This document shows positions 3,294 to 62,501 of a stretch of 64,000 nt of DNA, piece after piece. This DNA comes from Hyalangium minutum. Its GTDB lineage: Bacteria; Myxococcota; Myxococcia; Myxococcales; Myxococcaceae. The translations under genes were made by a program, and so were the position numbers. The notes beneath the pieces were generated by a model that was given only the letters and a program-made list of their open reading frames with translations, was not told the origin of the DNA and ran no database searches. Location: the NCBI RefSeq assembly GCF_000737315.1, contig NZ_JMCB01000008.1:434001-498000 (forward strand). The letters are read 5' to 3'. The first letter of the stretch is position 1; the number at the start of each line of letters is the position of its first letter.

Positions 3294-3489
3294 GTTCCGG
3301 CCCTCCCTCGCATCAAGGGCCTTTCATGTACCACGGCGCACGCTGGGAGGTTGCGCGCCGTCGAAGGCGCTCCGCGCTCTGGGACTTGGTCTGCTGCTGT
3401 TTGTGTAGCTGTTGCTGCTCGTGTGTGGTTCCCGGGTCAGACTAGACGGCTCGGAGAAGCCTAGTAACCTCGTTGAGGCATATGAGCCT

Positions 3490-3807
3490 TCAGGTGGCGT
3501 TCAGCTCGTCCAACTCGGCCGTACGCGTCCACCCGTTCGTCGTCTTTTGGGACGCGGCCGCCTCCGAACAACTCCGTTTCCACCGCGTCGCCTGTCTTCG
3601 TGTAGAAGTTCTGGGCTGAAGAGCACTGTCACGGCCAACCGCCTGGGGCCGCATTGACCTCTGGACGATCAGGCGGAGTGTGGTTTCAGAACGACGCAGT
3701 TCGCGGAGGCCGATAAGCGCAAAGACCTCGGATCTCAGGGCAAGGCCCTGAAAACAGCAGCCCGGCGCCCACAGGTTCTCTACCTCCTGCGAGGGCCGGG
3801 CTTTCAA
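3490..3807 (-). pseudogene. Degraded fragment of a myxobacterial paralogous hypothetical family
   Basis: The stretch ENLWAPGCCFQGLALRSEVFALIGLRE recalls a recurrent myxobacterial family (from memory); the remainder does not look protein-like. Confidence 0.3.
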
Positions 3808-3989
3808 AACGACGAGCCCCCAGTTACCCAGGGACCGTACTCGTGGGCACGAGATTGGTCATTCTGGACACTGCACCTGCTCGTCGTCAACACGAGCCTT
3901 CGGGCTCCGTGCAGGGGGATCGTCTGCCCTGCGCAAACGCCGTGCTCTTGGTTTTAGAACCCATCGAGAGAAGCGCTGAGGAATACCTC

Positions 3990-4235
3990 ATGACCATTCT
4001 GACCGACGTCGTCTCACTCTTTTCTGTGCTGAAGGGCAACCCCGAGGCAGTCGCTCTTCTGGGGAATCTGCTCGACCGCATCGACCCAGGATGCTTGTTC
4101 GTTCTGGCCGTCTGCTTCTGGCGCACTCGTGAGCGATCCCCCACGTGCGGAGCGTCAACGGGCGCAGGCAAGCAGACGAAGAAAAGAGCCACACGAAGCA
4201 GCTTGAAGAAGAGAAAGGGGCCCACGAAGAAATGA
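3990..4235 (+). CDS. Small hypothetical protein with hydrophobic segment and basic tail
   Basis: GAGG Shine-Dalgarno before the ATG at 3990; 81 aa. Confidence 0.35.
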   Translation: MTILTDVVSLFSVLKGNPEAVALLGNLLDRIDPGCLFVLAVCFWRTRERSPTCGASTGAGKQTKKRATRSSLKKRKGPTKK

Positions 4236-4300
4236 TGGCGCCTCCTGTCCGCTGGCTGCTGCGTGAAATTTCAGGTGCGCACGGGTGCAATGCGAAGCGC

Positions 4301-4660
4301 CAGGCGGCGGTGAAATTTCAGGTGGTCGGGGACCAGGGAGCCGAAGGCCGCAAGGCCTTCTTCATCGAGATCGAGGCGCGACCCGGGCAGGAGGACGCGG
4401 TGGTGCAGATGCTGCGCGACATCCGTGCCTGCGTCGAAGACGAGCCCGCCACCGGCCCCTGGTTCGCGGTGCGGTTCTCGACGACGCGCTTCGGCATCTT
4501 CGAGGCCTTCCCCGATCTGGCGGGGCGCCAGGCGCATGTGGACGGCGGCGGCGGCGACATCTTCCGCGACATCGAGCGGATGAACACGATCCTCAATGTC
4601 GCAGCCCGGGTCCATCGGGTCGATGTACTGATGAGCAAGGACCGGTTCGCTCCTCTGTGA
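4301..4660 (+). pseudogene. 5'-truncated antibiotic biosynthesis monooxygenase (ABM) domain protein
   Basis: KAFFIEIEARPGQEDAV..WFAVRF....FGIFEAFPD..GRQAH is an ABM-fold pattern. No convincing start; codon style changes abruptly near 4300. Confidence 0.65.
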
Positions 4661-4716
4661 ATCCTCTCGTTCCGGCCGGCTTCACACTGAGAACGCTTCC
4701 AGGAATTCCCGAATCC

Positions 4717-5499
4717 CTAGACCGTCGGCACCGTCCCCCCGTCGATCAAGTGCTCCGAGCCCGATATCGAACCCGCGCGCGGTGACACCAGAAAGGTGAT
4801 CAGGTCGGCGACTTCCTGCGGCTTGGCCGGCCGCCCGAGCGGGATGCCGCCGAGCGATTGCATGATGATCTGCTTGCCGCCCTCGTAGTCCGTTCCGGCC
4901 TGGGTGGCCAGGCGCTCGGCCAGCGCAACGGAGGCTTCGGTCTCGACCCACCCGGGCGAGACGCGCAGCACGCGCACGCCCTTCGGTGTCACCTCCTTCG
5001 ACAAGGCCTTGCTGTAGGTGGACAGGGCGGCCTTGGCCGCTGCATAGGCCGTTGTCGATTCCGGCAGCGGCAGCAGACGCTGGATCGAGCTGACGTGGAC
5101 GATGACACCCGAGCCTTGCGCCAGCATGGCAGGCAGCAAGGCGCGGTCGAGCCGCACGGCCGGCATGAGGTTCCGGTTCAACGCATCGAACCACTGCGCA
5201 TCGTCCAAAGCCGCAAAACCACCACCCGGCGCGCTCGAGCCGCCGAGCACATTGATCAGGATGTCGACGCCGCCCCAACGCTCTCGCACCGACCGCGCCA
5301 CCTCGGCGACACCTTCGGCCGTCGAGAGGTCGGCCGCGACATACGACACGCCGGCGTTCGGCTCCGCGGGCACAGCGCGTGCGGTGGTCATTACCTGCAC
5401 GCCCGCAGCGTGCAGACCTTGAACGACAGCGGCGCCAATGCCTTTGGTGCCTCCCGTGACCAGCGCCCGCAGGCCTTTCAGTTGGAGATCGAAGCTCAT
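4717..5499 (-). CDS. Short-chain dehydrogenase/reductase
   Basis: TGGTKGIG nucleotide-binding motif and YAAAK catalytic motif. Confidence 0.95.
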
Positions 5500-5825
5500 G
5501 CCGTGATCTCCAGCGATGCGATCAGACCCCGCTCCAGGCGGAACCGATACCGCAGATCGACCGGACTACCGGGGAAGTTGCCGGTGACGTGGGCTTGGAC
5601 GACCTGCGAACCGGCCTCGCGCTCCAGCGTGAACGGCTGCGTCGTGTACGTGTACTGGGCCGACGCCGCCGCCTTCCACGCCTTGATGGCGTCGAGGCCG
5701 ATGTGTGTGTGGCCTTCATCTTTGACCACGGCCTGAGCGGCAAAGCAGCGGGCCACGGCCTCGGGGTTCTGTGTGTCGGCGGCGAAGTAGGCCGCAATCG
5801 GCTCCGGAAGGGTCAGATCGTTCAT
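5496..5825 (-). CDS. SnoaL/NTF2-like protein
   Basis: [15 protein letters not shown]...[14 protein letters not shown]; stop overlaps the SDR start. Confidence 0.9.
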
Positions 5826-5921
5826 GGTGGTTCCTCGGTAGTGATGACCGGAGAATGCGCGCCCTGGAGAAATAAGAGAATCATATAGACTCTTCACAGG
5901 TTATGTAGAGGTGGCTACAGA

Positions 5922-6830
5922 ATGCGTGGATCGGAATTCGCCGAACTGAAGGCTTTTGCCGCAGTGGTCGAGCGCGCCAGCTTCGCGCGCGCAGCAGAGC
6001 ACCTGGGGGTGTCGCCTTCAGCGCTCAGCCAGACCATCCGCCTGCTGGAAGCCCGGCTTGGAGCGCGGCTGCTGAACCGCACCACGCGCAGCCTGGCGCC
6101 CACCGTCACCGGAGAGCAGCTGTACAGGCGCATCGCGCCTCTTCTCCGAGAGATGACCGAGGCGGTGGCCGAAGCCAGTGCAGCGGCCGGGCGAACGCGC
6201 GGCACGCTGCGCATCAACACGCTGGGGATGGCCGCCCGCCAGGTCATCGCGCCACGGCTGGGCCGGTTTCACCGCGCGCACCCGGAGGTGGCACTGGACA
6301 TCGTGGTCGACGATGCGCTGAGCGACATCGTCGCCGGCCGCTTCGATGCCGGCATTCGCGTGGGCGTACGTCTGGAGAAGGACATGGTCGCCGTGCGCTT
6401 GACGCCGGACGTGAAGATGGTCGCCGTGGCGTCCCCTGACTACCTCGCGCATCGCGGCATCCCGCGCACCCCCGGTGACCTGCATGGCCACGCGTGCATC
6501 AACTGGCGACTCCAAGTCGATGGACGTGCCTACCGCTGGGAGTTCGAGAAGAGGGGAAAGCGGATCGAGCTCGCGGTCGATGGCCCGCTGGTCACCAACA
6601 ATGCCGATGTCGGCGTTGCCGCGGCGCTGGAAGGGCTGGGCATTGCCTATGCGTTCGGCCACGAGGGCGTGGACGAGTACCTTGCCCGAGGAGAGTTGGT
6701 CCGGGTGCTCGCGGACTGGTCGATCGCACGACCAGGGCTGTTCCTGTACCACCCCAGCCGACGCCACTTTCCGGCTGCGCTGCGCGCCTTCATCGACTGC
6801 ATGCTGGACAAGGACATGCCCGCACCGTGA
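5922..6830 (+). CDS. LysR-family transcriptional regulator, divergent from SnoaL-SDR
   Basis: SFARAAEHLGVSPSALSQTIR HTH, RLLNRTTRS, CrgA-like substrate-binding domain. Confidence 0.95.
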   Translation: MRGSEFAELKAFAAVVERASFARAAEHLGVSPSALSQTIRLLEARLGARLLNRTTRSLAPTVTGEQLYRRIAPLLREMTEAVAEASAAAGRTRGTLRINTLGMAARQVIAPRLGRFHRAHPEVALDIVVDDALSDIVAGRFDAGIRVGVRLEKDMVAVRLTPDVKMVAVASPDYLAHRGIPRTPGDLHGHACINWRLQVDGRAYRWEFEKRGKRIELAVDGPLVTNNADVGVAAALEGLGIAYAFGHEGVDEYLARGELVRVLADWSIARPGLFLYHPSRRHFPAALRAFIDCMLDKDMPAP

Positions 6831-6849
6831 CCCGGATGGCGCTCACGCC

Positions 6850-6965
6850 AGCTCGAACACCACGTCCTGTGCGCCTTCCCACAGCTCCAGCTCGGCTCAG
6901 GGCGCGCGCGTCGGACAGCTCCAGCTCGGGCGCCGCGTACAGGTCCACCTCGGCACGGGGGACAT
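6850..6965 (-). mobile_element. IS91-like transposase 3'-end remnant
   Basis: Shares CCAGCTCGG..GGCGCGCGCG.CGGACAGCTCCAGCTCGGG with the remnant at 8277-8322, which is contiguous with a recognisable IS91 C-terminus. Confidence 0.5.
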
Positions 6966-7179
6966 ACCGTAGGACTCTCCAAGTCCTATTCAACTACCCG
7001 CCCTCTGCGAGCATGAACTTTCCAAGTCGGTGCGTGCCAGAAGACTTCGTAGGTCATAGGCTGGGATGGCATGGGACTTGTTAGGTCCTAAAATCTCGTC
7101 TGACGTATTGGTGTGTGCGCAACCTGTCCCGGGGAACTTGCGATAACTCCGATCACTCGGGCTGTGCCCGGGAGGCCCC

Positions 7180-7749
7180 ATGACCCATCACGCCAACTCT
7201 TGGCGCCTTAGGTGTGCTCTCCTGATCTGCGCCAGCCTGTTAGCCGGTGTGGGCTGTAGTTCGACGCAAGCTGCCCATCAGGGCACCGGCGGATCGGGCT
7301 CTGCGGATGGGGCTGCCGCATACGTGCAGGAAACCGCGCAGCGCGGGGATTCCATCGCGCAGGCTGCCCCCGCCCAATGCGGCCCGTTTGACAGCACCGT
7401 TTCCTGCTGCCTTAAGCAGCACCCGGGCGAGTTCGGACGCTGCGGGGCTATAGACCCTGGGAAGGCCCCCACGCGGGCACCCAAGCAAGCGCCCCGGACG
7501 GATCCGAATCCGTACCCGCCCCCCACTACGGATCCGTACCCGCCCCCCACGGATGCAGCCCCTCCCGACAGACGGAAGAGGGATCAGCAATGCCGCGAGT
7601 ATTGGAATCAGTGCATCGCGCTCGGAGGCGAGTACGAGAAGCGCGGGCAGCATGGCCGCACCATCTGCGCGTCCTGCTACGACCAGTGCATGGGGCTGGG
7701 CTACTGGCCCAAAGAGGTCAACGACTTTGAATGTCTCGGAGGCTTCTAG
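7180..7749 (+). CDS. Lipoprotein with Pro-rich linker and Cys-rich C-terminal domain
   Basis: GGAGG RBS; signal peptide with lipobox LAGVGC; PNPYPPPTTDPYPPP linker; C-terminal CxxxxxxC..CxxCxxxC. Confidence 0.8.
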   Translation: MTHHANSWRLRCALLICASLLAGVGCSSTQAAHQGTGGSGSADGAAAYVQETAQRGDSIAQAAPAQCGPFDSTVSCCLKQHPGEFGRCGAIDPGKAPTRAPKQAPRTDPNPYPPPTTDPYPPPTDAAPPDRRKRDQQCREYWNQCIALGGEYEKRGQHGRTICASCYDQCMGLGYWPKEVNDFECLGGF

Positions 7750-7751
7750 CC

Positions 7752-8252
7752 GTGGCCCTCCTTCGTTGGGAATGGTGGAACAAGGTTGCCGAGGAACGCC
7801 AGTGGCTCACCCTCGGAATGAGCTTCGCAGAAGTGCCTTTTGACGCCTACGTGGCCGCGCTCAAGGATCTAGAGCGACAGTTTGCACGAGAGGCGCGAAC
7901 TCCTGGCGAACGCCTGCACCTCAAGCGCCTGACGGCAGAGGACGCATTGAACGCGGCATTCAGGATGGATCGCCCATGGAAAGACTTTGGCCCGTGGCTG
8001 CGCAGGCTCAAACGGCTGGGCTTCCCGAATCTCTGGAGCCGCTATCAGATCTCGACGATCTATGTGCAGTCCTTGCACAACTTCCCGGAGCAAACCCGAG
8101 ACGCTTTTGAGATGTTGGCGGACACAAGGCGCAGGGTCTTGAGGCGACGCAAGGATCGTTCTTCGCGCCAACAGATGCTTGACGGGATCGAGCACGCCCG
8201 ACGCGAGGCAGCACAATACGGCATCCAGCCGCCCGCGAAATCGAAGCGGTAG
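7752..8252 (+). CDS. Hypothetical helical protein, partner of the upstream lipoprotein (immunity-like)
   Basis: GTG start 2 nt after the upstream stop; charged helical sequence; no signal peptide. Confidence 0.75.
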   Translation: MALLRWEWWNKVAEERQWLTLGMSFAEVPFDAYVAALKDLERQFAREARTPGERLHLKRLTAEDALNAAFRMDRPWKDFGPWLRRLKRLGFPNLWSRYQISTIYVQSLHNFPEQTRDAFEMLADTRRRVLRRRKDRSSRQQMLDGIEHARREAAQYGIQPPAKSKR

Positions 8253-8254
8253 GG

Positions 8255-8600
8255 CACGGGAAACGCCCGCACAATCCCAGCTCGGCCCCATGGGCGCGCG
8301 CGGCGGACAGCTCCAGCTCGGGCCGGTGGCGCTCGCCAGGACGGCAGCCATCGTCGCCGCTCCGGTCGCGGGAGGGACGGCCCTTCGCCTCATCGACTCG
8401 GGCCGCCCCCCGCACAGATCTCCGGCCCCCTTCTCGTACGCCAACACCCTGAAGCCTGCCTCCACACCTCAAGCACGCCAACACATCCAGGGCGAACGTC
8501 CTTTTCTGCAGCCCGGCCCAGTCCAAACCGGGGGTGCGCTCCTTCCAAAGGCTCCTCCACCCTCGCGGCAAAGGCGGGGCTCTCCTCCGTAAGCCCCGGC
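8255..8600 (-). mobile_element. IS91-family transposase C-terminal remnant
   Basis: Minus frame reads PGLDWAGLQKRTFALDVLACLRCGGR, the DW..LL.R.F..DV..C..CGG signature also seen at 26570-26640, 49810-49845 and 55060-55110. Confidence 0.8.
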
Positions 8601-8646
8601 TCCGCCCCTGCTTGAGGGAGCAACGTCCCCGGCCTCGGACGTGCAG

Positions 8647-9489
8647 TCAGAGCATCGGGAGCTCGGGCCTGGGCTCGGAGGCAAAGGCCTCGTCGATGAG
8701 CGAAATCTCCTCCCGCGTGAGTCGCAGGTCCGCGGCCCCCGCATTCTCCTCCACGTGCGCCACGCGCGAGGCTTTGGGGATGGCGAAGAGCGAGGGGCGC
8801 CGGGTGACGAAGGCGAGCGCCACCTGGCGGAGGGTGGCCCCGTGGTTGCGCGCGACCTGGACCAGCGCGCGCCCCCTGGGTGACGAGGGAGACGGGAACT
8901 GGCCGTGGCCGAGGGGGCTGTAGGCGACCATCGACACCCGGTGGTCCTCGCACCAGGGGAGGACGCGGTACTCGGTGGTGCGCTCCTCCAGGTTGTAGAG
9001 CACCTGGTTGCAGGTGATGCGCCCCTCGCCCGTGAACCCGAGCGCCTCCTCGAGGTCGTCCACGTCGAAGTTGCTCACGCCCCAGCTGCGAATCTTCCCC
9101 TGGTCCACCAGCCGGTCGAAGGCGCCGAACGTCTCCTCCAGGGGATACTTCCCCCGCCAGTGCAGCAGGTAGCAGTCCAGCCAGTCCGTGCCCAGGCGCT
9201 CCAGCGAGCGCTCACAGGCGCCCAGGGTGCCGCGGAAGCTCGCGTTGGAGGGCAGCACCTTGGAGACGAGGAAGACCTCGTCGCGCCGGCCGGAGATGGC
9301 CTCCCCCACCATCTCCTCCACCGCGCCGGAGCCGTACATCTCCGCGGTGTCCACGTGGGTCATCCCCAGATCCAGCCCTCGGCGGAGCGCCCGGATGGCC
9401 TCCTCCCGGTGGGCCTGGTCCAGGTACCAGGTGCCCTGGCCCAGCACCGGCACCTGCCAGCCGGTGGGGCCCCACGCGTGCGTCCTCAT
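8647..9489 (-). CDS. Aldo/keto reductase
   Basis: LGQGTW, DTAEMYG, LVSKV, D.YLLHW, WGVSNF, NQVLYNL, AYSPLG, IPKAS motifs. Confidence 0.95.
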   Translation of the reverse strand: MRTHAWGPTGWQVPVLGQGTWYLDQAHREEAIRALRRGLDLGMTHVDTAEMYGSGAVEEMVGEAISGRRDEVFLVSKVLPSNASFRGTLGACERSLERLGTDWLDCYLLHWRGKYPLEETFGAFDRLVDQGKIRSWGVSNFDVDDLEEALGFTGEGRITCNQVLYNLEERTTEYRVLPWCEDHRVSMVAYSPLGHGQFPSPSSPRGRALVQVARNHGATLRQVALAFVTRRPSLFAIPKASRVAHVEENAGAADLRLTREEISLIDEAFASEPRPELPML

Positions 9490-9679
9490 GCGGTACCTCC
9501 TCGTTGCCCGCAAAGGTTGGGCACGCCGCTCCCTCCGTGCAGGCGGAGGCCGTCACGACCCAGCGAGGGCTCACCGGTCCCGAGGCAGAGCCGCTCTGGC
9601 CGCCGGGCCGGGCCGGACGGACCTTCAGGCGGAAGGGACGGACGCTGGCGCCGGCGTGGCCGCCGGTGAGGAGGGCAGG

Positions 9680-10342
9680 ATGCGCAACCCCCGGGTCGAG
9701 CAGTACAGCACCACGGACACCCGCCGTGCAGAGGGCTTCGCGGACGCGGTCTTCGCCATCACCATCACCCTGCTGGTGCTCGAGCTGCGTCCACCCGAGG
9801 TCCCGCCCGGCCAGCTGCTCGCCGGGCTGCTGCATCAGTGGCCGTCGTATCTCGCCTACGTGACGTCCTACCTCTACATCGCGGTCATCTGGCTCAACCA
9901 CAAGCACGCCTTCCTGCGCATCCGCTCGATGAACCGGGGGCTGCACTGGGCCAACCTCGGAATCCTCTTCACGACCGCGCTGCTGCCGTTCGCGACCGGG
10001 GTCCTGTCGAAAGCGGTGCGGGAAGGCGATCCGGCCGACGAGCGGACGGCCGTGGCGCTCTACTCGCTGGTCGGCGCGTTCCTGTGTGGCACCTGGGTGG
10101 TGTTCTTCCGCTACCTCGGCCACCACCCGACCCTGCTCGACGAGGGAGTCCCCGCGGAGTTCTTCATCCAGGAGACCACCCGCGCGTGGCTGGGGGTCAT
10201 CCTCTACGCCGCCGCCGGGGCGTTCGGCTACCTCGTCGCCCCGGTCATCGCGCTGGTGCTCTTCCTCGCGGTGCCGACCTTCTACGCCATCACCAGCCAC
10301 GGGCTCTACGAGCTGGGCATCGTGTTGCGTCGGCGTCGCTGA
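9680..10342 (+). CDS. TMEM175-family potassium channel
   Basis: RAEGFADAVFAITITLLVLEL signature with multiple TM helices. Confidence 0.92.
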   Translation: MRNPRVEQYSTTDTRRAEGFADAVFAITITLLVLELRPPEVPPGQLLAGLLHQWPSYLAYVTSYLYIAVIWLNHKHAFLRIRSMNRGLHWANLGILFTTALLPFATGVLSKAVREGDPADERTAVALYSLVGAFLCGTWVVFFRYLGHHPTLLDEGVPAEFFIQETTRAWLGVILYAAAGAFGYLVAPVIALVLFLAVPTFYAITSHGLYELGIVLRRRR

Positions 10343-10481
10343 CGCTCTCTCTGCCGAAGGCCCTATTGCGGCGGACATCCGCCGCGCTGATTTCGGTTGT
10401 GCTCACCGTTCCCGCAGCTCCTGGGGAGAAGCCCATCATCAATCTACATCCCGGTTTCCAAAGCCAAACGAGAGTCCCTAT

Positions 10482-10961
10482 ATGTTTCTGGGGCTTTCGT
10501 GGGCGCACAAAAGCATCGCGGCAATTCAGGCTTCAAGACATCAGTTGGCTACTTACAGCCATGTAGGCATATGGCTTTCCGACAAGGAGAGCCACGAGCG
10601 GTCAATCAAGCAAGATCTTGAAGAGCCTTTGATGCAGCTTGCAAAGAAGCTCAACAAGAAGACCGCGCAAACTAAACGCGGTCCCGAATGGGGTAGGCTT
10701 CTGTTTGTGCAAACATGGATTGCGTCCGAGTTTGACCGCATAAGGCGTGATCAGCTTGAACGATTCAACAATGAGCTTTTCGCCTCCAGTGGCTTGGGCG
10801 CAGCGCTGCTGGTGAGTCGAAAATGGGATGCCTTGAGGCTAAGGCATAATTGGATTGTGCATCCAATCTTGCCGCATAGTCGGCAATCGGACTTGTGGGA
10901 ACTCCTCTCCCGTGTAAGCCAATCGGGTAGCGAAGTTTTGGTGCCACAAGTTACAGTGTAA
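10482..10961 (+). CDS. Low-GC hypothetical ORF, probably a 5'-truncated fragment
   Basis: Open frame from about 10385 to 10961 in a visibly AT-richer patch; no recognisable domain. Confidence 0.35.
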   Translation: MFLGLSWAHKSIAAIQASRHQLATYSHVGIWLSDKESHERSIKQDLEEPLMQLAKKLNKKTAQTKRGPEWGRLLFVQTWIASEFDRIRRDQLERFNNELFASSGLGAALLVSRKWDALRLRHNWIVHPILPHSRQSDLWELLSRVSQSGSEVLVPQVTV

Positions 10962-11040: not shown

Positions 11041-11570
11041 CTACTTCAGCGCGTCGGCGAGAGTCGGGATCTTGCTCGCCTTGCGTGCCTGCTCGACCTC
11101 CGCGAGCTGCTTGTCGGTCAGCTCGACGTGCGTCCAGCGTTAGCCGCTGATCACCTTCCCGGACTGACCGTCCTTCGGGGGAGCTGCTTCGGGTAGACCT
11201 CGCAGCGGATCAGCAGGTGGGTTCCCGCCTGCCGCTCGTCGAAGAACTTCTTCAGCGCGGCCGGGTTGGCGAACTCGAGTTCGTCAGCGCCGACGAGGGT
11301 CATCAGGAACGACTTGAAGCGCCCGCCGCCGCCCTTCTTCTGATCGCTCAGGTTCTCGACATAGTCGACGGTCTCGCTGACTCGGCTCGGGGCCTCGCCG
11401 CCCGGAAGGGGCTCGGACTCGCGAACCTTCAGCTCGCCGATCGCGCTGTCGCCCTTGAAGCCCTCCTTCGTGCGGATGACCTCCACGGCGAGCAGGTAAC
11501 GACCGAAGCGGGGATAGCGGCCCCCCGCGGCAGCGGGCGCGGTCGCGATCTTCGTCAATGCACTGTTCAC
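11041..11570 (-). pseudogene. Phage-like ssDNA-binding-type protein, disrupted
   Basis: Natural frame to YPKQLP, then a 1-nt frameshift to KDGQSGKVISG, an in-frame TAA, and RWTHVELTDKQLAEVEQARK..LADALK-stop at 11041. SSB assignment is inference. Confidence 0.6.
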
Positions 11571-11796
11571 GTTGCTTGCTTCCTCTCTTTGGGTGAGTGC
11601 CAGCGACGCGGGCTTGCGACCGCTGGCACACGCCTAAATTGGTGCGCTTGCGGCGCGTGGCTCAGACTTCCGCGAGTGGCTCAGATGATGGAATCTTCCT
11701 AGATAGGGAAGTGTCCCTTCAGCCGATTACCTCACCGCTATTGGTTTCGGATACCATGTGGCATCAAAAAGCAACTAACGCCAACGAGAGGTCGCA

Positions 11797-12768
11797 ATGG
11801 AGAATCCCGCAAGGACGATATTCAACTCGATCAACACTGATCAGGATGTGGGACGCCTGATCAGGACGCAGGTGGAAGATCTTTATGTTGACTTCAAGAC
11901 CAAGCAAGATCACGCCATTTCGGACGTAGATCAACATCTCCAAGCAGTGCTTTCCAAGGCAATTGCGGGATTCGCCAATGCCGATGGAGGAGTGATTGTC
12001 TTAGGTGTCAATGCCCCCCAAGGGCAGCCGCCTTCCTTGAAATTGATCGCGCCACTTAATGACTTCGAGCAGGAAGTTAACTCGTATATTCCTCGCTCCA
12101 CTTCCTTTCCTGTCGCAGGGGCGGAAACGAAAAAGGTCCCTTTCCAAGGACAAGCAGGCGGCGTGGTGTTGGTGTACGTCCCCAAAAGCGACCTTGCGCC
12201 GCACTGTAGCATGAAGGATCGCCGTTACTATCAACGGATCGGCGACTCGTTCTTGCCGATGGAGCACTACCAAATTGCAGACATGTTCGGACGGCGCCAC
12301 CAACCGCGGCTCGTTCCCTATGTTGAGGCTAGCCGCGATATCAACTCCCGTGGAGGGATGGAGTTGATCGTTGGCGTCAAGAACGTTGGAGTGGCGATCG
12401 CTAGATACGTCTATTTGTCCGTGGAGGAGCGTGCACAATTTTCGTTTTCAGATTACGGCATTAGCGGCAACGGCCATTGGGGCTTGCCGCCCTTTGTTGG
12501 CGGGAGCCGGCTAAGTGAATATCGAGGTGGTGTTGATCATGTTATTCATCCCGGAGTTGCCCTGCCTGTCACAAAGATGAGAGGTGCCGTCAGGGTTGAT
12601 ACCCCGGCCACTTTGTTGGAGGAGTACTCACAGATTACAATTGCTGGTCGTGTCGTTGCAGAGGGGGCCGTGTTGAAAAACTGGCGTGTGTTTCTTTCTA
12701 GAGCACAGATACAGCAAATTCTTAGCGGGCCCAACCAATCGGTGGTCCTTGATAGTATACTGACTTGA
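11797..12768 (+). CDS. Schlafen/AlbA_2-domain protein with C-terminal Ig-like beta-sandwich
   Basis: VEDLYVDFK, I.GFANADGGVIVLGV, YYQRIGDSFLPM mark AlbA_2. C-terminal LIVGVKNVGVAIA..VIHPG is a CARDB/Ig-like pattern. Lower GC than the flanks. Confidence 0.85.
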   Translation: MENPARTIFNSINTDQDVGRLIRTQVEDLYVDFKTKQDHAISDVDQHLQAVLSKAIAGFANADGGVIVLGVNAPQGQPPSLKLIAPLNDFEQEVNSYIPRSTSFPVAGAETKKVPFQGQAGGVVLVYVPKSDLAPHCSMKDRRYYQRIGDSFLPMEHYQIADMFGRRHQPRLVPYVEASRDINSRGGMELIVGVKNVGVAIARYVYLSVEERAQFSFSDYGISGNGHWGLPPFVGGSRLSEYRGGVDHVIHPGVALPVTKMRGAVRVDTPATLLEEYSQITIAGRVVAEGAVLKNWRVFLSRAQIQQILSGPNQSVVLDSILT

Positions 12769-12808: not shown

Positions 12809-13115
12809 CTAGAGCGCGGGCCAGTCGTAACTCGCGAAGCAAAGCTTTTGCGGCGTGCCTTCGGTCTGCTCAATGAAGCGCGCGAAGTCTCGAGCCTTGC
12901 GGAAGGCTTCGATCAGCTCGTCGGTGTGCTGATACAGCTCGACCTCGACCTCGACCTCGACCTCGTCGGCGAGTTGCCCTTGACGGTGACACCGCCCGAT
13001 CGCCTGTTCCCACGCGGCGCCGTCGGCGGGCGGGTTCACGAAGAGCATCCGCGAGAACGCGGTTAGGTTCTTCCCCGTGCCATGCGCCCGAAGGGACGCT
13101 ACGATCGACCGCTTG
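12809..13115 (-). pseudogene. C-terminal fragment of an SF2 (SNF2-like) helicase
   Basis: IVASLRAHGTGKNLTAFSRMLFVNPP..AWEQAIGRCHRQGQ matches helicase motifs V/VI; no N-terminal ATPase domain. Confidence 0.75.
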
Positions 13116-13480
13116 CCGTTCTCGCGGATGCTGGTGCTCAGCCGCTCAAGCGAGGAAACCTGCGGCTAATGCACGGGCATCAGATCGCGAAGGTGCTTCC
13201 TAAGCATCACGCCGCGAAGGTCGCCGACGAGTGGGGAGTTCCCGGGCTCACGGTCGCCGTCGGGCACTCTCACCGGCCGGGGATGCACGTTCGGCCTGGC
13301 CGCGAGGGCAACTGCCGGGCGATCGCGGTCGGCGCGGGCCGCACGCTGGATCCCGACTGGGTGAAGGGGCGCCCGAGAGGATGGAGAACGAGCTGCTCGT
13401 CGCGTATCTCCTGCCGACTGGGCACGTCGCGGCTTACAGCGTGCGGCTCGTTAGGGGCGCGTTTCTCTGGGGGGTAAGGT
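13115..13480 (+). pseudogene. C-terminal fragment of a calcineurin-like metallophosphoesterase, frameshifted
   Basis: LMHGHQ and VAVGHSHR metal-ligand motifs; continues in another frame as WENELLVAYL. Confidence 0.6.
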
Positions 13481-18119: not shown

Positions 18120-18475
18120 CAGGACTCACCGGTCAGCTCTCTCGAACAGCCCCACATTGCTGGAATCGCGCATGCGGCCAAGTCTCACCAGTGAGACTTT
18201 TGGAACAGTCCCCACCACCGGGAACCGGCATGCGGCCAAGTCTCACCAGTGAGACTTTTGGAACAGCGGCGCATCAGCGGGGAGCGCGACGGGCCCAGTC
18301 CACGATCGTGGACTGTCCCAGTCGTGTGCGGCGAAGACTCACGCCTGTCGATTCAAGGGGTTGGCCGCTTGTGGCTGCCTCGCGCCTCATGCCCCTTGCC
18401 CGTAACCCCTCGGCCTTCCAGCGCTTTTCTACGACAGTCTCCCAACGTAGACGAATCGTCCACGATCGTGGACTG
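18120..18475. repeat. Cluster of palindromes and a 39-bp direct repeat
   Basis: GCATGCGGCCAAGTCTCACCAGTGAGACTTTTGGAACAG at 18170-18208 and 18228-18266 (58-bp period); perfect palindrome CAGTCCACGATCGTGGACTG near 18296-18315, repeated near 18457-18475. Confidence 0.9.
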
Positions 18476-18526
18476 TCTTCGGGGGTGGCTCATCACAAGC
18501 GCCTGTTTTTACTCGGACTCAGGCCG

Positions 18527-18547
18527 TGGCACTCCGCGTGCTCTAGG
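18527..18547 (+). promoter_or_regulatory. sigma54-type -24/-12 promoter
   Basis: TGGCACTCCGCGTGCTCTAGG: GG-N10-GC, about 65 bp upstream of the ATG at 18612. Confidence 0.7.
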
Positions 18548-18611
18548 GCCCTGCAACCGCAACGTCAAGCGGCCGGGGACGCAGGGTGCGTCTCCCAGGA
18601 GAACCCCTCTC

Positions 18612-19358
18612 ATGTTCACTCTGTTCAAGAGCAAGGAAGCCACCCGCGCCGTTCCCGAGGCCCCCTTCGTCCACCGCGCCATCCCGGACGACATCACCCT
18701 GGAGCAGCTGGGCTCCGAGCTGCGCCAACTGTTCGCCCAGGAGAACTCCAACCACCACCGCATGGGGGAGATCTACAACCACATCGTCGAGAAGAAGCTG
18801 GCGGAGGCGGCCGGCTACAAGGACTCGACGGAGTACTTCCGCAAGGAGTTGGCGGACCTGTCCGTGGCGTCGCTGAAGATGTACGGGGCGGTGGCGGAGA
18901 GCTTCAGCGAGCCGGTGGCGCGGCGCTTCGGCGTCACGTGCCTGTCGGTGCTGCTCACCTACGCGGAGGCCACCGGGCTGGAGCTCAACCACGAGGAGCC
19001 GGGCCCCACCCCCATCGAGGTGCCGGACGAGCACGGGAACGTGGCGGTGCAGCCGTTCGGCGCGTGCAGCGTGGACCAGATGCGCCGGGCCCTGCAGCGC
19101 AAGCGCCGGCCCACCTCCACCAAGCCCCTGCCGCCGGAGAAGGTGGCGCTGGCCGAGCAGTACTCCGCGGCGGTGGCACAGCGCTTCCCCAAGGGCAAGG
19201 GCACCCAGTTGAAGGTCAAGCTGCGCAACCAGAAGGGCAAGGCAGTGCTCGACATCCAGGGCATCCCCCTGGAGCAGATCCTCCAGCTCGTTGAAGCGCT
19301 CTCCGCCGAGCTGCCTCCGGTGAGCACCGGAGAGAAGGCGCCGGTGCAGCCGTCCTGA
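18612..19358 (+). CDS. Myxobacterial hypothetical protein, possible helical DNA-binding N-terminal domain
   Basis: AGGAG RBS; strong GC3 codon bias; MGEIYN..GY....YF..EL..LS...LKMY.AVA..F resembles DUF3102/ParB-HTH-like patterns (inference). Confidence 0.8.
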   Translation: MFTLFKSKEATRAVPEAPFVHRAIPDDITLEQLGSELRQLFAQENSNHHRMGEIYNHIVEKKLAEAAGYKDSTEYFRKELADLSVASLKMYGAVAESFSEPVARRFGVTCLSVLLTYAEATGLELNHEEPGPTPIEVPDEHGNVAVQPFGACSVDQMRRALQRKRRPTSTKPLPPEKVALAEQYSAAVAQRFPKGKGTQLKVKLRNQKGKAVLDIQGIPLEQILQLVEALSAELPPVSTGEKAPVQPS

Positions 19359-19595
19359 TGTTCCGTCCGTGAGTCATGGCCCCGCGTTCCAGAAGCTCGG
19401 GACGCGGGGCCTCCTTCTCCCCGGGCTACCTGAGGCTGCCCTCATGTCCGACGCGTTCCTGCCCGCGCTGTTTCCCGGCTACGCCCGCAGCGTGCAGTGC
19501 CAGCACATCTTCCTCGACATAAAAGTGTCGTCCGGAGAGAGGAAATGCTGGAGCCAGCAGCCTGAGCGTCCCTACTCTTGGGATAAAACGCCTAC

Positions 19596-20351
19596 ATGGC
19601 TCAGCATCTCATCAGTGCAGGGACGGATATCGCCTGTGTGGGCATCTGGGATGCGGGACTTGCCCCATCGGCACGTCCGATTGGGGACAAGGATCTGGCT
19701 GCGAGCGCGGAGCGCGGCGAGGTTCTTCCAATACAAACACACGCGGACGGAACATACCTGTTGAGAATCCACGTGGATGAGCCGTACGTGCCACCTCCTG
19801 CACAGCGATTCGAGACGATGGGTCGAGAGTTCGGGCTGAACCTCGGCTCGGGCACTGCGCTCGTCGGCGGGTGTGAGGATTTCCGAAACCCACGCCCGCA
19901 GATCACTTTTGCTGCGGACCGATTCCATGTGGAGCCTTCCTGGTATCGGGTGCAGGTTCATCTGAACCGGACAGACCCAGAACTGCTCGAGCGGCTCGCT
20001 CACAGGGAAGCAGAGACGGCCTTGAGCGAAGAGGAGAACGTGCGCTATCGCCAACTCGGAAAGGACCAACACCGGGCGCTCTTCTTGGGGCTGGGAGCTC
20101 TGGGAACTGCCATCTTGTCCGGTGTGATTCGAGGCACTGCCGGTGTCATGGGCGGAGGCGTTGCCGTGCTGCTGGCAGGGGCGGCTTTCGCGTTTGCTCG
20201 CCGCGCCAAGAAGGCCGGCTACGACTCGCTGCATGCTCGCTATCAGACCGCGCTCGCCGCCGCGCATGAGCCAGATGTTGTGCTCGTACTACACCGCACG
20301 GGTGAACCCATTCCAGGCGGATCCGTCGACTTGGAGGCCACGGCTTCGTGA
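19596..20351 (+). CDS. Hypothetical membrane protein
   Basis: 251-aa ORF with two adjacent hydrophobic Gly-rich helices near the C-terminus. Confidence 0.75.
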   Translation: MAQHLISAGTDIACVGIWDAGLAPSARPIGDKDLAASAERGEVLPIQTHADGTYLLRIHVDEPYVPPPAQRFETMGREFGLNLGSGTALVGGCEDFRNPRPQITFAADRFHVEPSWYRVQVHLNRTDPELLERLAHREAETALSEEENVRYRQLGKDQHRALFLGLGALGTAILSGVIRGTAGVMGGGVAVLLAGAAFAFARRAKKAGYDSLHARYQTALAAAHEPDVVLVLHRTGEPIPGGSVDLEATAS

Positions 20352-20540
20352 CGCGAGGCCCTCTGGTACACAGTTCATCGAGGTCCTGACCCGCTCCTCT
20401 ATGGAAGCGGCGGTAATCGAAACTGCGGCTTCCAGTTCTGGGAACTCCTCTCGCCGTGAATCTGCGAGCTTCTCACCACGGCTTGGGCCCGCCCCTTCGG
20501 GCCTCAGAAAAATGGGTCGGCGTGGCGTGTGTCGCGCGGG

Positions 20541-21242
20541 CTAGGGCAAGCGGACGCCGCGCTCGGCCTCGAAATGGCGCCGCCAGCGCGCCCGCAGGTT
20601 GCTTTGAGGCACTCCGTGAGGCTCGTCGAGGAACTCGGCGGCGAGGATGCGGTCGGTTCGAAAGTGCCGGAAGGTCGATCGAAGCTCGCACCAGGCGGCG
20701 AGCAGCCGCACCGTCTCGGCATAGCCGATGACGACGGGCCAGATCGTCCGCTCGCTCTCCCGGCCATGGTCGTCCCGATAGCGGATGTGGATCTTCCGCC
20801 CGCTGCGGATCCACGCGCGGGTGCGGGCCATGTCCAGCCCATCCACGGCGGCGCTCATGGGCGGCGGGGCGCCGATGGTCGGCTCGGCGATGAACGGGCG
20901 CAGCCGTTCCGGCACGACCGCGGCGATCTTGGCCACGAGGTCTCGCGCCGCGCTCGCGAGCTCGGCGTCGCTTCGCTCGGCGACCCACTGCGCGCCGAGC
21001 ACCGCGGCCTCGAGCTCAGCGGGCGTGAGCATCAACGGCGGCATGTCGAAGTCGCGCTCAAGTACGTAGCCCAACCCCGCCTCGCCGCGGATCGGCACCC
21101 GCTGTCCGATGAGGTCCGCGACGTCGCGATAGACGGAGCGCTTCGACACCTCCAGCTCCGCGGCCAGAGCGCCAGCCGTCACCGGGCTGCCGGAGCGCCG
21201 GAGAATCTGGATGATCTGGAACAGACGATCGGCGCGGCGCAT
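20541..21242 (-). CDS. YafY-family HTH-WYL transcriptional regulator
   Basis: MRRADRLFQIIQIL, LA.ELEVS.RSVYRD, GEAGLGY, AWCELR..FRHFRTDRI. Confidence 0.95.
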   Translation of the reverse strand: MRRADRLFQIIQILRRSGSPVTAGALAAELEVSKRSVYRDVADLIGQRVPIRGEAGLGYVLERDFDMPPLMLTPAELEAAVLGAQWVAERSDAELASAARDLVAKIAAVVPERLRPFIAEPTIGAPPPMSAAVDGLDMARTRAWIRSGRKIHIRYRDDHGRESERTIWPVVIGYAETVRLLAAWCELRSTFRHFRTDRILAAEFLDEPHGVPQSNLRARWRRHFEAERGVRLP

Positions 21243-21336
21243 GGGGCGGTTTCCTGCTGACAGCATGCTGGCAACAGCCCTTCGCTACAAGCGGGCCACG
21301 GTCACAGCAGTGGCCGCCCCCCGAAGGAGGACACGC

Positions 21337-22003: not shown

Positions 22004-23188
22004 GTGGGAACGCACGTGTGGGCGTACCGGCGAAGGCAGCCGGAGGGGACGGTGCTGTACGAGGCGGTGCGGGAGAACCTGGCCAGATTGCTGGCGGAAG
22101 CCAGCGAGGTAGGGCGAGGCCTGCCCCGGTACGTGGAGCGAGACTTCGCCAGGTACCTGGAATGCGGAGTGCTGGCGCACGGCTTCGCGCGGGTGCGCTG
22201 CGAGAGTTGCAAGGACGAGCTGCTTCGTCGCCTTCTCGTGCAAGGGCCGAGGGGTGTGCCCGTCCTGCAACGCGAAGCGGGCGCATGTGACGGCGGTGCA
22301 CCTGGTGGAGCAGGTGCTGCCGCACGTGCCCTACCGGCAGTGGACGCTGTCCTTTCCGCACCGGGTCCGGTGGGTGCTGCTCAAGAACGTGGGACTGCTT
22401 TCGGACGTCCTCACCGTCTTCCTGCGCGCGGTGTTCGCCCTGCAGCGCCGGAGGGCACGGCGACAGGGTCTGCGCGCTGGGCAGGTCGGAGCCGTCTCTT
22501 TCATCCAGTTCTTCGGCTCCGCCTTGCAGGTAACGCCGCACTTCCACTCGCTGGTGCCGGATGGCGTCTTCGTGCCGCGGGAGGGCAGCGTGCGCTTCGA
22601 GCCGTTGCCGCCGCCCACGCAAGGTGAGGTGGAGAGGCTGCTGAGGGTGGTGCGCCTGCTGGAGAAAAGAGGGGCCCTGCCCGCGCAAGGACCCGAGGAT
22701 GCGCTGCAGGCGTACCAGGCGCACTCCCTGCAGCAACGGCTGCGCTGGACGGAGGTGGACCGCCGGCTCCCTCCCAGCAAGCAGCCCCGGTGCGCCTTGC
22801 TGGAAGGCTTCTCCCTGCATGCCAATACTCACCTCCATGCCAACGACAGGCAGGGGCTGGAGCGGCTGTGCCGCTATGGAGCGCGTGGCGCGCTGGCGCT
22901 GGAGCGCCTGTCGCGAATGGAGGATGGCCGCATCGCCTACCGCATGAAGCGCCCGCTGCCGGACGGCACCACGCACCTGCTCTTCACCGGGCTGGGACTG
23001 TTACGGCGTGTAGCGTCCCTGGTACCTCCGCCACGGGCAAACCTCACGAGGTTCCACGGCGTCTTGGCTCCAGGCGCGCAACTGCGGCCATTTCTGGTCC
23101 CCCGAGCGGGAGGGGAGGAGAGGAGCGAGGCGCCCCAGGCAGCGGCCAGCACGGAGCCGATGAAGGAGAAGACGCCGCGAGGAGACTT
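22004..23188 (+). pseudogene. IS91-family rolling-circle (HUH/Y2) transposase, frameshifted and 3'-truncated
   Basis: Zn-binding domain [27 protein letters not shown] with an extra base near 22225; HUH motif PHFH; LCRYGARG; breaks off after MKEKTPRGD. Confidence 0.9.
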
Positions 23189-23423
23189 CGCGGATCGGCA
23201 GGGCCCTTTTCCCGAGGGAATTGCGTATCCCATGCCCGAGAAGCCATTCAAGGAGCAGAGCAAGCCGCCGTGCGTCGAGGGCCGGGAAGAGGAAGTCCGG
23301 GGCGGATGCTGGATTCCCCACGCGAAGACCGCGCCCTGTTCCCGAGGCACGGCCGAGTTGCAGGGCAAGTGCTACGTGCCCGTGAAGAAGCCGGACCCGG
23401 CACCGACTTCCGTTCAGCCCTGA
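23189..23423 (+). pseudogene. Captured C-terminal Cys domain of a myxobacterial kinase-type gene, fused in frame to the transposase
   Basis: [30 protein letters not shown] parallels the C-terminus of the 2475..3293 protein. Confidence 0.7.
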
Positions 23424-49613: not shown

Positions 49614-49845
49614 CGAGCATCAGAAAAATGGGAGGCCAGTTGAAGGTCCTGGGCCTGTGGGTTGTCTTGAGCGCCTCAACACCCCGCTGCCTGATGTGGC
49701 CCTCGCGCCGCGGCCAGCCTCGCACCTGCCGTGGTCAGGCCCAGGGGCTTCACAATCGCGCGCCCCCCTCGTGCTGCCTTCACGTACGCCAACACCCTGA
49801 AGCCTGCCTCCACACCTCACGCAGGCGAACACGTCGAAGTCGAGT
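49614..49845 (-). mobile_element. IS91-family 3'-end remnant
   Basis: Minus frame reads LDFDVFACVRCGGR; shares GAGCATCAGAAAAATGGGAGGCC.GTTGAAGGT with 54614-54647. Confidence 0.8.
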
Positions 49846-54611: not shown

Positions 54612-54730
54612 TGGAGCATCAGAAAAATGGGAGGCCGGTTGAAGGTGAGGGCTGGAGAGGAAGGGCCGAAGAGGGCTGCGGACGGGGTCCGCCCGAGCAG
54701 TAGCAACTCGGCCCAGTCCTCTCGCGGACT
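54612..54730 (-). mobile_element. IS91-family terminal remnant
   Basis: Reverse complement CCTCTCCAGCCCTCACCTTC matches about 26907-26926; also contains REDWAELLL (compare RGDWAELLK). Confidence 0.7.
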
Positions 54731-59804: not shown

Positions 59805-61280
59805 ATGCCGAAGATCTATTCATTAAAAGAAATTTTCTCGATCGACCTCAGATCGCTGGCCTGGTTTCGCGTGCTGATGGGCGCGCTTGCCGTGGCCGAC
59901 GGGTTCAACCGGCTTTCCGTCGCGGAGGCTCATTACTCGGACAGCGGCGTTCTACCCAGAGCCGCTTACCTGACCGATATTGCGACCCGGTTCGAATTCA
60001 GCCTCACCCTGCTCTCCGGAGACTGGCGGTTTCAGGCTGCACTCATTTTGCTCCAGGTCGTGTGTGCCTTCTGCTTTATGGTGGGTTATCGCGGCCGCCT
60101 CAGTGCATTTCTCACCTGGATTCTGCTGCTTTCGTTTCACACGCGGCTTCCGATCAATGCACATGGCGGCGACGACGTTTTGCGGCTGATGTTCTTCTGG
60201 TCGATATTCTTGCCAGTCAGCGCCAAGCACTCCATGGATGCCATCTTGAATTCCGAGCGAGAGCCCGTGCCAGACTCTGTGTCCGGCTTTGCGCCGGCTG
60301 CGATTCTCTTGCAGCTGGCCTTTGTTTACTCCTTCTCGTTCATCCACAAATGGAATCCCGTGTGGAACTCCGAGTTTTCGGCGCTTTACTATGCCTTGAA
60401 CATCGATCATCTGGTGACTGCGCAAGGACGGTGGCTCTTGCAGTTTCCCGCCTTCTTGAGGTTCGCCACGCTGGGTACGATGATCCTGGAATGTACGGGG
60501 CCGCTGCTGGTGTTCTCGCCTGTCTTTCTGCCTCAACTGAGGATGATTGTTCCAGCGGTTTTCATCTTGTTCCACTTCTGCCTGTTCTTAGGCATGTACC
60601 TGGGGATCTTCCCGTGGATCTGCGCGATCAGCTGGTTGCTGTTTTTGCCGGGTGGGTTTTGGGCAAAGGTTGAACCTCGATTGGGTATCGGCTCCGGCCG
60701 CTTCCAGGGTTGGGTTCCCAGAATCGAGGCCCTGGTCAGAAAAAGGCCTCTGGCGTCCAGTGTCTCCTGGCTCAGCCAAAGCTTGGCGGCGGTCTTCCTG
60801 CTCTGGGTGCTCTGGTGGAATCTCACCACGGTTCATGCCCTCCGTGAGATGCCGAAGCCGCTCGGCGCTATCCTCTTCGGGCTCTACCTGGATGCAACGT
60901 GGAACCTGTTCGCACCGTTTCCGTTCAAGGATGATGGATGGTTCGTCATCGATGGACTCACCCAGAATGGGGAGCACATCAACTTGATGACTCCAGGCGC
61001 ACCGCTCACGGATGCCAAACCCGCCCTCGTCGCGAAGACTTACCCCAACTCCCAATGGAGGAAATATTTCATGAGCCTCTGGTTTGGGGACAATGACGCC
61101 TACTTGCCTTACTTCGGGCAGTATTTGTGCAACTCCTACAATCGGGACAAGCAGGGACTTGATCGATTGGTCTCATTCAACATGTATTACATGCTGGAAA
61201 TGACACCACCGCCCGGGGAGCCCGCTCCGCCCGTTGAGAAGAAATTGATGTGGACACAGTTCTGCAGCGATGAATCCTAG
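59805..61280 (+). CDS. HTTM-domain (SdpB / gamma-carboxylase-like) membrane protein with C-terminal W.LFAP segment
   Basis: DLRSLAWFRV, HGGDDVLRLMFFW..FLP, QLAFVY.FS.IHK, W...ALYYAL, ATWNLFAPFP; many TM helices; lower GC than the flanks. Confidence 0.85.
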   Translation: MPKIYSLKEIFSIDLRSLAWFRVLMGALAVADGFNRLSVAEAHYSDSGVLPRAAYLTDIATRFEFSLTLLSGDWRFQAALILLQVVCAFCFMVGYRGRLSAFLTWILLLSFHTRLPINAHGGDDVLRLMFFWSIFLPVSAKHSMDAILNSEREPVPDSVSGFAPAAILLQLAFVYSFSFIHKWNPVWNSEFSALYYALNIDHLVTAQGRWLLQFPAFLRFATLGTMILECTGPLLVFSPVFLPQLRMIVPAVFILFHFCLFLGMYLGIFPWICAISWLLFLPGGFWAKVEPRLGIGSGRFQGWVPRIEALVRKRPLASSVSWLSQSLAAVFLLWVLWWNLTTVHALREMPKPLGAILFGLYLDATWNLFAPFPFKDDGWFVIDGLTQNGEHINLMTPGAPLTDAKPALVAKTYPNSQWRKYFMSLWFGDNDAYLPYFGQYLCNSYNRDKQGLDRLVSFNMYYMLEMTPPPGEPAPPVEKKLMWTQFCSDES

Positions 61281-61715: not shown

Positions 61716-62501
61716 ATGTCAGTCGGGTTGAAGAAACCACTGGGTTTCGGAGGGATGCTGGTCGCGGCGGGAATGCTGTTCAACACGGCGAGCACAGCGC
61801 TCGCGGCTGACTCGGCTCCCAGCCAAGTTGTCCCGGAAGTGCTCGGGGCCGGCCCTGGTGGCGGCCAGGGCGGCGGCTACGGCGGCCAGCAGGGCGGTGG
61901 CCATGGTGGCGGCTACGGCGGCCAGCAGGGCGGTGGTCACGGTGGCGGCTACGGCGGCCAGCAGGGTGGTGGCCACGGTGGCGGCTACGGCGGCCAGCAG
62001 GGTGGTGGCCACGGTGGCGGCTACGGCGGCCAGCAGGGCGGTGGCCATGGTGGCGGCTACGGCGGCCAGCAGGGCGGTGGCCACGGTGGCGGCTACGGCG
62101 GCCAGCAGGGCGGTGGCCACGGTGGCGGCTACGGCGGCCAGCAGGGCGGCGGTCACGGTGGCGGCTACGGCGGCCAGCAGGGCGGTGGCCACGGTGGCGG
62201 CTACGGCGGCCAGCAGGGCGGTGGCCACGGTGGCGGCTACGGCGGCCAGCAGGGCGGCGGTCACGGTGGCGGCTACGGCGGCCAGCAGGGCGGTGGCCAC
62301 GGTGGCGGCTACGGCGGCCAGCAGGGCGGTGGCCACGGTGGCGGCTACGGCGGCCAGCAGGGCGGCGGTCACGGTGGCGGCTACGGCGGCCAGCAGGGCG
62401 GTGGCCACGGTGGCGGCTACGGCGGCCAGCAGGGCGGTGGCCACGGTGGCGGCTACGGCGGCCAGCAGGGCGGTGGCCACCGCGGCGGCCACGGGGAATA
62501 A
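61716..62501 (+). CDS. Secreted glycine-rich repeat protein
   Basis: GAAGGG RBS; signal peptide ending in ALA-A; body made of GGQQGGGHGGGY repeats. Confidence 0.8.
   Translation: MSVGLKKPLGFGGMLVAAGMLFNTASTALAADSAPSQVVPEVLGAGPGGGQGGGYGGQQGGGHGGGYGGQQGGGHGGGYGGQQGGGHGGGYGGQQGGGHGGGYGGQQGGGHGGGYGGQQGGGHGGGYGGQQGGGHGGGYGGQQGGGHGGGYGGQQGGGHGGGYGGQQGGGHGGGYGGQQGGGHGGGYGGQQGGGHGGGYGGQQGGGHGGGYGGQQGGGHGGGYGGQQGGGHGGGYGGQQGGGHGGGYGGQQGGGHRGGHGE
61881..62480 (+). repeat. 36-bp tandem repeat, 16 full copies plus a partial one
   Basis: Unit GGCGGCCAGCAGGGCGGTGGCCACGGTGGCGGCTAC, with variation only at synonymous positions. Confidence 0.97.

Follow-up and report, generated by a model that had tools for sequence, protein, structure and literature searches.

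A candidate Schlafen-type anti-phage protein with a predicted Ig-like sensor domain in a decayed phage-like element of a myxobacterium

The gene and its locus

The gene under study (11797..12768, plus strand) lies in a 64,000-nucleotide stretch of DNA, the whole of which was analysed and is referred to here as the window. As given in the list of open reading frames, it is complete and comprises 323 codons plus a stop codon, and the same interval was also called as a gene in the source assembly (GCA_000737315.1, contig JMCB01000008.1). The encoded protein (about 35.5 kDa) is a fusion of an N-terminal Schlafen nuclease domain and a C-terminal domain predicted to be Ig-like. Its start is supported by the full-length homologues (approximately 320 amino acids), which have the same start region, and a putative Shine–Dalgarno sequence (GAGAGG, 11786..11791, plus strand) can be read 5 nucleotides 5' of the ATG. 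A scan around the gene for sigma-70-like promoter and terminator consensus sequences, which are a poor guide for a myxobacterium, found none. The GC content of the gene is 52.7% compared with 66.3% for the window average, and its GC3 is 57% compared with 75–95% in the adjacent genes. An earlier note on this DNA had described the reading frame as intact and lower in GC, and both statements hold.

The gene is part of an island of approximately 3 kb between ordinary chromosomal genes, which encode an aldo-keto reductase and a TMEM175-type channel on the left and a DUF2381 protein and a kinase on the right. The genome, that of Hyalangium minutum, is of the high-GC myxobacterial type, with 66% GC in the window and with DUF2381 and many Ser/Thr kinases in the flanks. 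Two remnants of element genes were recognised in the island by tblastn with proteins of Myxococcus hansupus. Both are located on the minus strand, antisense to the Schlafen/Ig-like gene, which agrees with the opposite orientation to the phage genes that had been noted before. The first (11047..11570, minus strand) is the frameshifted remnant of a gene for a protein of 176 amino acids, which was detected in two frames (amino acids 16–139 at 86% and amino acids 126–175 at 64% identity; nucleotide identity 86%). The second (12830..13138, minus strand) covers the last 100 codons or so of a gene for an SNF2-type phage helicase of 631 amino acids (amino acids 532–630 at 84% identity). The full helicase of M. 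hansupus matched the DNA helicase family phrog_62 at 1.4e-16, and the fragment in the window matched it weakly. Compared with the intact gene of M. hansupus, a hexanucleotide repeat in the helicase remnant, (CTCGAC)x4.7 at 12938–12965, extends an EVEV run.

The Schlafen/Ig-like gene had also been described as the only unbroken open reading frame in this region. This is nearly correct; an ORFan of 159 amino acids at the left edge of the island (10482..10961, plus strand; 51% GC) is likewise open, and its membership of the element is uncertain. It had no homologue in 5.8 billion proteins and no match in Pfam, PHROG or PADLOC, and it may be either a gene specific to this lineage or a non-coding remnant. 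Having no homologues and not being conserved beside the relatives of the Schlafen/Ig-like gene, it was rejected as a partner gene.

In M. hansupus (CP012109), a syntenic trio was found in which both flanking genes are intact and the Schlafen protein is 68% identical. The Schlafen gene of this organism is also low in GC (53% versus 64–67%). The trio sits in an element adjoining ffh that carries a phage-type integrase, an excisionase-like HTH_17 protein, a DNA polymerase A, a PD-(D/E)XK exonuclease, the SNF2-type helicase, fragments of a methyltransferase and a VapE primase, and IS insertions. Because of this synteny and the low GC content common to both genes, we infer that the Schlafen/Ig-like gene is foreign cargo, placed antisense within a phage-like replication module. 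The term "ruined prophage", which the earlier note had used, thus appears essentially right as far as the remnants are concerned, since their counterparts are intact in a phage-like, integrase-bearing element. However, no phage structural genes were present in the stretch of the M. hansupus element that was examined, and the island in the window contains no integrase, no tRNA gene and no convincing flanking direct repeats that could serve as att sites. In 50,697 phage genomes, no match was obtained for the island with blastn or for the protein with tblastn.

A contig of a close relative (L090), which is 96–97% identical on another gene of the window, bears a Schlafen copy with 92% identity. 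Only a 1.6-kb piece containing this gene is left there, and its flanks are trimmed otherwise than in the window. In both cases the DNA of the element was trimmed to different extents and the gene was kept. The L090 copy has a 1-nucleotide deletion at codon 231, beyond which the frame is open to the native stop codon. Because the downstream frame is still open, the frameshift appears to be either very recent or an assembly error. A 50–80-bp intergenic repeat flanks the 1.6-kb segment of L090 on either side in direct orientation (L090 positions 9384–9445 and 11050–11131), and it also occurs twice in the window (49615–49647 and 54614–54696). The right-hand neighbour of the segment corresponds to the gene at 48.4–49.6 kb of the window in inverted orientation. 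The inverted neighbour and the bracketing repeats imply a rearrangement or a repeat-mediated relocation in L090.

A PADLOC search of ten neighbouring proteins detected no known defence gene within 10 kb, with the exception of a WYL regulator about 8 kb away. This HTH_11/WYL regulator (20541–21266, minus strand; PADLOC WYL model, 2e-58) and a Y2-type transposase (22254–23423, plus strand) are encoded 8–10 kb downstream of the Schlafen/Ig-like gene, and no link to it was shown for either. Near the other end of the window, a polytopic membrane protein of 491 amino acids (59805–61280, plus strand) is encoded in a strongly T-skewed patch of lower GC content (56%). It is followed by the gene for a predicted secreted protein (61716–62501, plus strand), which consists almost wholly of approximately 18 tandem GGYGGQQGGGHGG repeats.

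The nuclease domain and the predicted Ig-like domain

Residues 27–155 (11875..12261, plus strand) form the Schlafen nuclease domain, which was assigned by Pfam, Foldseek and a family profile. They matched SLFN_AlbA_2 (PF04326) at E = 3.7e-12 with 47.2 bits (gathering cutoff 25.3 bits), covering profile positions 1–117 of 118. The AlphaFold model of the full protein (pLDDT 89.4) had its best PDB neighbours in Foldseek among the N-domains of SLFN13, SLFN11, SLFN12, SLFN14 and SLFN5 and the tRNase domain of SAMD9; the Schlafen fold was recovered with a probability of 1.0 for the SLFN matches. A profile built from 45 relatives matched SLFN12 at 4e-8 and the CRISPR-associated Schlafen CbCash at 7e-5, as well as SLFN13/8, SLFN14, SLFN5 and SLFN11. 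The Pfam and Foldseek matches confirm the Schlafen (AlbA_2) nuclease that had been recognised in the earlier note.

The catalytic motif E27-x4-D32-x-K34 (EDLYVDFK; 11875..11898, plus strand) was identified by its invariance and by alignments to SLFN14, RorSlfn5 and CbCash. In an alignment of 116 full-length relatives, E27, (D/E)32, K34, N61 and R147 are invariant. The profile alignment places D32 on E211 of SLFN14, the residue changed in the E211A structure. In the tRNA-bound cryo-EM structure of CbCash (PDB 9ylu), E17, D22 and K24 are located with a metal ion at the scissile phosphate, and the metal used for cleavage is Mn2+ or Mg2+ (PMC13462974). E27, D32 and K34 fall on these three residues; because CbCash was not recovered in a single-sequence PDB search with the present protein, this mapping was taken from the profile alignment, in which the offset is constant. 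The motif also corresponds to E15/D20 of RorSlfn5 from Raoultella ornithinolytica, in which the E15A/D20A exchange abolished both defence and Mn-dependent tRNA cleavage (PMC13056530). The earlier reading of EDLYVDFK as an E/D/K catalytic triad agrees with these published roles. The third carboxylate of SLFN13, D248, aligns in the profile alignment with A73, to which N72 is adjacent, and this position is acidic in only 55% of the family. We do not regard its absence as a sign of inactivity, since the centre defined by the structure of CbCash with bound tRNA consists of E-D-K and a metal. The E-D-K catalytic centre of the Schlafen-fold nuclease domain is intact.

Residues 168–323 (12298..12765, plus strand) are predicted to fold as an Ig-like beta-sandwich, the putative sensor, according to the AlphaFold2 model, Foldseek and the domain profile. 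Modelled alone, they gave a pLDDT of 93.8 and a pTM of 0.89. The model consists of eight strands of at least three residues each, then a short helix and, at the end, a further strand, and the region is all-beta in the model of the full protein, too. All top Foldseek matches were Ig-like sandwiches, namely TRAP-beta, the integrin alpha ectodomain, the GAE/adaptin appendage and the MG domains of alpha2-macroglobulin and complement. The scores were weak (best E = 0.016, TM 0.4–0.5, probability 0.9–1.0), and no close solved relative was found. The C-terminal domain is thus, as modelled, an Ig-like beta-sandwich. The earlier note had called the C-terminus Ig/CARDB-like, of which the first half stands. 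The CARDB identity was dismissed for lack of Pfam support, as no Pfam family including CARDB (PF07705) matched the C-terminus of the protein at E ≤ 1 or any of the C-terminal domains of 33 relatives. The V.N.G..A..HPG pattern on which that description had drawn is real and conserved in the family, with N196 present in 100%, G198 in 98%, P252 in 80% and G253 in 75% of the 116 relatives.

Family, genomic context and selection

A word-index search yielded 53 relatives, mostly of approximately 320 amino acids and many of them aligned near full length. An exhaustive HMMER search with the profile of the C-terminal domain returned 718 clusters (representatives at 50% identity), 407 of them at E ≤ 1e-10; the two matches obtained by the word-index search with the same profile were uninformative in comparison. 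Nearly all full-length proteins of the HMMER set have 300–345 amino acids with the domain at approximately 165–320, and Ex4(E/D)xK was present at positions 24–40 in 68 of 75 proteins with the domain. Other N-terminal partners also occur. In P0072, the C-terminal beta-sandwich is joined to a genuine GGDEF cyclase (Pfam 1e-40), P0070 and P0167 carry it behind a Cys-rich N-terminus that is HNH-like by eye only, and P0058 has a transmembrane helix followed by two tandem copies. Because the beta-sandwich is fused to the GGDEF cyclase and to other N-termini, it seems to be a portable module, which would fit a sensor role.

Across the 116 relatives, the nuclease domain shows a higher mean pairwise identity than the sensor (40% versus 28%). 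Substitution rates were estimated with the Nei–Gojobori method. In comparison with the L090 copy, dN/dS was 0.10 for the nuclease and 0.60 for the sensor, the latter value being based on few substitutions; in comparison with M. hansupus, the values were 0.05 and 0.19, with dS saturated. These rates indicate purifying selection on the nuclease domain and, for the sensor domain, either relaxed or diversifying selection. The low-count sensor value of 0.6 and the deletion in L090 leave room for a recent relaxation of constraint on the gene, which may have taken place.

The genomic context of the relatives is predominantly mobile or defence-related. Of eight neighbourhoods sampled in chromosomes or metagenomes, six had such a context; one of the exceptions is purely metabolic and the other ambiguous. 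In Bdellovibrio reynosensis (CP093442, handled as L088), the homologue directly follows the Wadjet genes JetABCD (L088 positions 3309–9965) with an integrase nearby, and a ubiquitin-like BubE/ThiF/Multi_ubiq module is located approximately 8 kb downstream (L088 positions 18308–20352). Judged by its gene content, this arrangement of JetABCD, the homologue and the Bub module is a compact defence island. On two Bdellovibrionota-type contigs, the homologue is cargo of an integrative and conjugative element (ICE) between type IV secretion genes and the integrase, in one case together with two HipAB pairs. A further neighbourhood combines an integrase with an ImmA/IrrE-type repressor and a group II intron reverse transcriptase, and another contains an integrase, a reverse transcriptase and a type IIG restriction–modification gene. 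Full-length relatives with 28% identity are borne by megaplasmids of the Bacillus cereus group. In addition, a tailed phage (IMG/VR_UViG_3300015615_000325; L081 positions 9992–10939) encodes a two-domain relative with 30% identity and the motif EDLQLDFK, which sits in the head-morphogenesis module between a Mu-F-like head gene and the major capsid gene. The neighbourhood analysis that the earlier note had suggested thus shows that homologues are enriched in defence islands and on mobile elements. This is in line with the published data on prokaryotic Schlafens (pSlfns), approximately 70% of which are encoded within 10 kb of a defence gene and 30% outside defence contexts (PMC13056530). No model of PADLOC-DB v2.0.0 (2023), which predates the pSlfn papers, and no NCBIfam family matched the Schlafen/Ig-like protein.

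A candidate defence protein and its known counterparts

By analogy with the characterised pSlfns, we consider it fairly probable that the gene encodes an anti-phage system made up of one protein, a candidate pSlfn whose sensor is Ig-like, carried as low-GC cargo of a decayed phage-like element. In a mechanism modelled on RorSlfn5 and CbCash, the protein would be present as an oligomer in the idle state. During infection, the beta-sandwich would bind a protein made by the phage; this is a tail assembly chaperone in the case of RorSlfn5, and the trigger here need not be the same. Binding would switch on the metal-dependent cleavage of tRNA loops, upon which translation would stall and the phage yield would fall. 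The gene presumably arrived as a moron on the phage-like integrative element, which would since have decayed to approximately 3 kb with the Schlafen/Ig-like gene as its only recognisable gene still intact.

Part of the evidence would also fit a recently stranded relic, the former defence or competition gene of the element, which would now be unexpressed or relaxed and would so far have been spared an inactivating mutation. The other recognisable genes of the element are all broken, the L090 copy is frameshifted at codon 231 with a sensor dN/dS of 0.60 in that comparison, no promoter site was found in the scan and no partner defence genes are located nearby. We regard such a relic as unlikely. 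All 323 codons form an open frame at 53% GC, the residues invariant in the family are all present, and the nuclease domain has a dN/dS of 0.10 even in comparison with the closest relative. Moreover, two lineages lost the flanks independently and both retained the gene, and the open frame downstream of the L090 deletion dates this deletion as very recent, if it is not an assembly error.

Two further explanations concern the function of the protein. It is quite unlikely that it is a trigger-responsive tRNase serving the mobile element instead of the host, either as an addiction or competition toxin or as a responder to a cellular stress signal rather than to a structural protein of a phage. No antitoxin-like partner is conserved beside the gene across contexts, and the sole characterised Slfn–Ig protein responds to a phage protein and shows no toxicity by itself (PMC13056530). 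Points that speak for this explanation are that nearly all relatives are carried by integrative elements, ICEs, plasmids or phages, that HipAB toxin–antitoxin pairs flank one of them, and that the same C-terminal domain also occurs joined to a GGDEF signalling enzyme. It appears very improbable that the protein binds nucleic acids or acts as a regulator without being a nuclease. The relatives are annotated as "AlbA family DNA-binding", "helix-turn-helix domain-containing" or "ATP-binding protein", and some mammalian Schlafens are without nuclease activity (PMC13462974). However, these database names are automatic labels derived from other AlbA_2 architectures, no helix-turn-helix or ATPase domain was detectable with Pfam and NCBIfam, and the invariance of E-D-K in 116 relatives would not be expected of a pure binding protein.

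The reading as an anti-phage protein can be compared with a recent survey of 5,930 prokaryotic Schlafens with 55 architectures, in which fusions to Ig-like domains (pSlfn5) account for 3.9% (Perez Taboada et al., Nat Microbiol 2026; PMC13056530). The earlier note had referred to prokaryotic Schlafen–Ig fusions as phage sensors or effectors, which is verified by this work, as pSlfn5 is a single-gene defence system acting by tRNA cleavage (PMC13056530). RorSlfn5 is a hexameric, Mn-dependent tRNase that cuts the anticodon arm of tRNA; its Ig-like domain binds the tail assembly chaperone of phage T5, and the protein is non-toxic alone (PMC13056530). In chimeras of pSlfn5 proteins, the specificity moves with the sensor domain (PMC13056530). 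A single-gene system consisting of a Schlafen and an Ig-like sensor that acts as a trigger-activated tRNase has therefore already been published (2026), and the present finding is confirmatory in this respect. The residual novelty lies in the compact, widespread and apparently portable putative sensor domain, which a myxobacterium has kept from a phage-like element that is now decayed.

RorSlfn5 and the present protein are both single polypeptides with an N-terminal Schlafen nuclease bearing Ex4DxK and a C-terminal Ig-like beta-sandwich, which in the present case is a modelled one. The RorSlfn5 sensor was likened to integrin ectodomains and to the Ig-like domain of complement C5 (PMC13056530), and both sensors have integrin-ectodomain and complement-type domains as structural neighbours. 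The two families also have in common that conservation is higher in the nuclease than in the sensor and that their genes are associated with mobile and defence loci. Differences exist in size and host. RorSlfn5 has approximately 380 amino acids and 43.1 kDa (untagged) with the motif at 15–20, whereas the present protein has 323 amino acids and approximately 35.5 kDa with the motif at 27–34; the region following the nuclease is about 70 residues shorter here, and the host belongs to the Myxococcota, unlike that of RorSlfn5. The size gap between 43.1 and approximately 35.5 kDa argues against orthology of the two proteins, whose sensors were compared by published description. Judged by architecture and fold class, there is a good probability that the present protein works like pSlfn5.

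As for the sensor itself, we tentatively suggest, as a possibility, that the beta-sandwich is a distinct and widespread module other than the RorSlfn5 sensor, which would recognise another phage component. It would be portable, being attached mostly to a Schlafen tRNase and otherwise to a GGDEF cyclase, a Cys-rich HNH-like N-terminus or a membrane-anchored tandem form, so that one detector would serve different immune or signalling outputs. The GGDEF fusion offers a route to study the coupling of one phage-sensing fold to different effectors. Provided that the present protein is functional, Schlafen immunity that targets tRNA and uses an Ig-like sensor would also comprise Myxococcota, Bdellovibrionota and phage- and ICE-borne copies, and it would include a compact sensor subfamily (approximately 35 kDa), the trigger of which could be found with myxophages.

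CbCash shares with the present protein the prokaryotic single-lobe Schlafen nuclease and differs in the sensor. In Cash, this is a Csx15 Rossmann-like cA4-binding domain acting downstream of type III CRISPR, whereas a beta-sandwich is predicted here and no CRISPR locus is adjacent. The mammalian SLFN11, SLFN12, SLFN13 and SLFN14, which are tRNA-targeting antiviral effectors, have the same fold as the present N-domain (Foldseek probability 1.0) with an Ex4ExK motif; unlike the present protein, they are built from two pseudo-symmetric lobes, a linker and helicase domains. PARIS AriB, PrrC and Shedu have unrelated nuclease folds and no sequence similarity to the present protein, but they follow the same logic, in which a phage cue activates a nuclease and growth arrest results. 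Shedu likewise pairs a common nuclease core with varied sensor domains.
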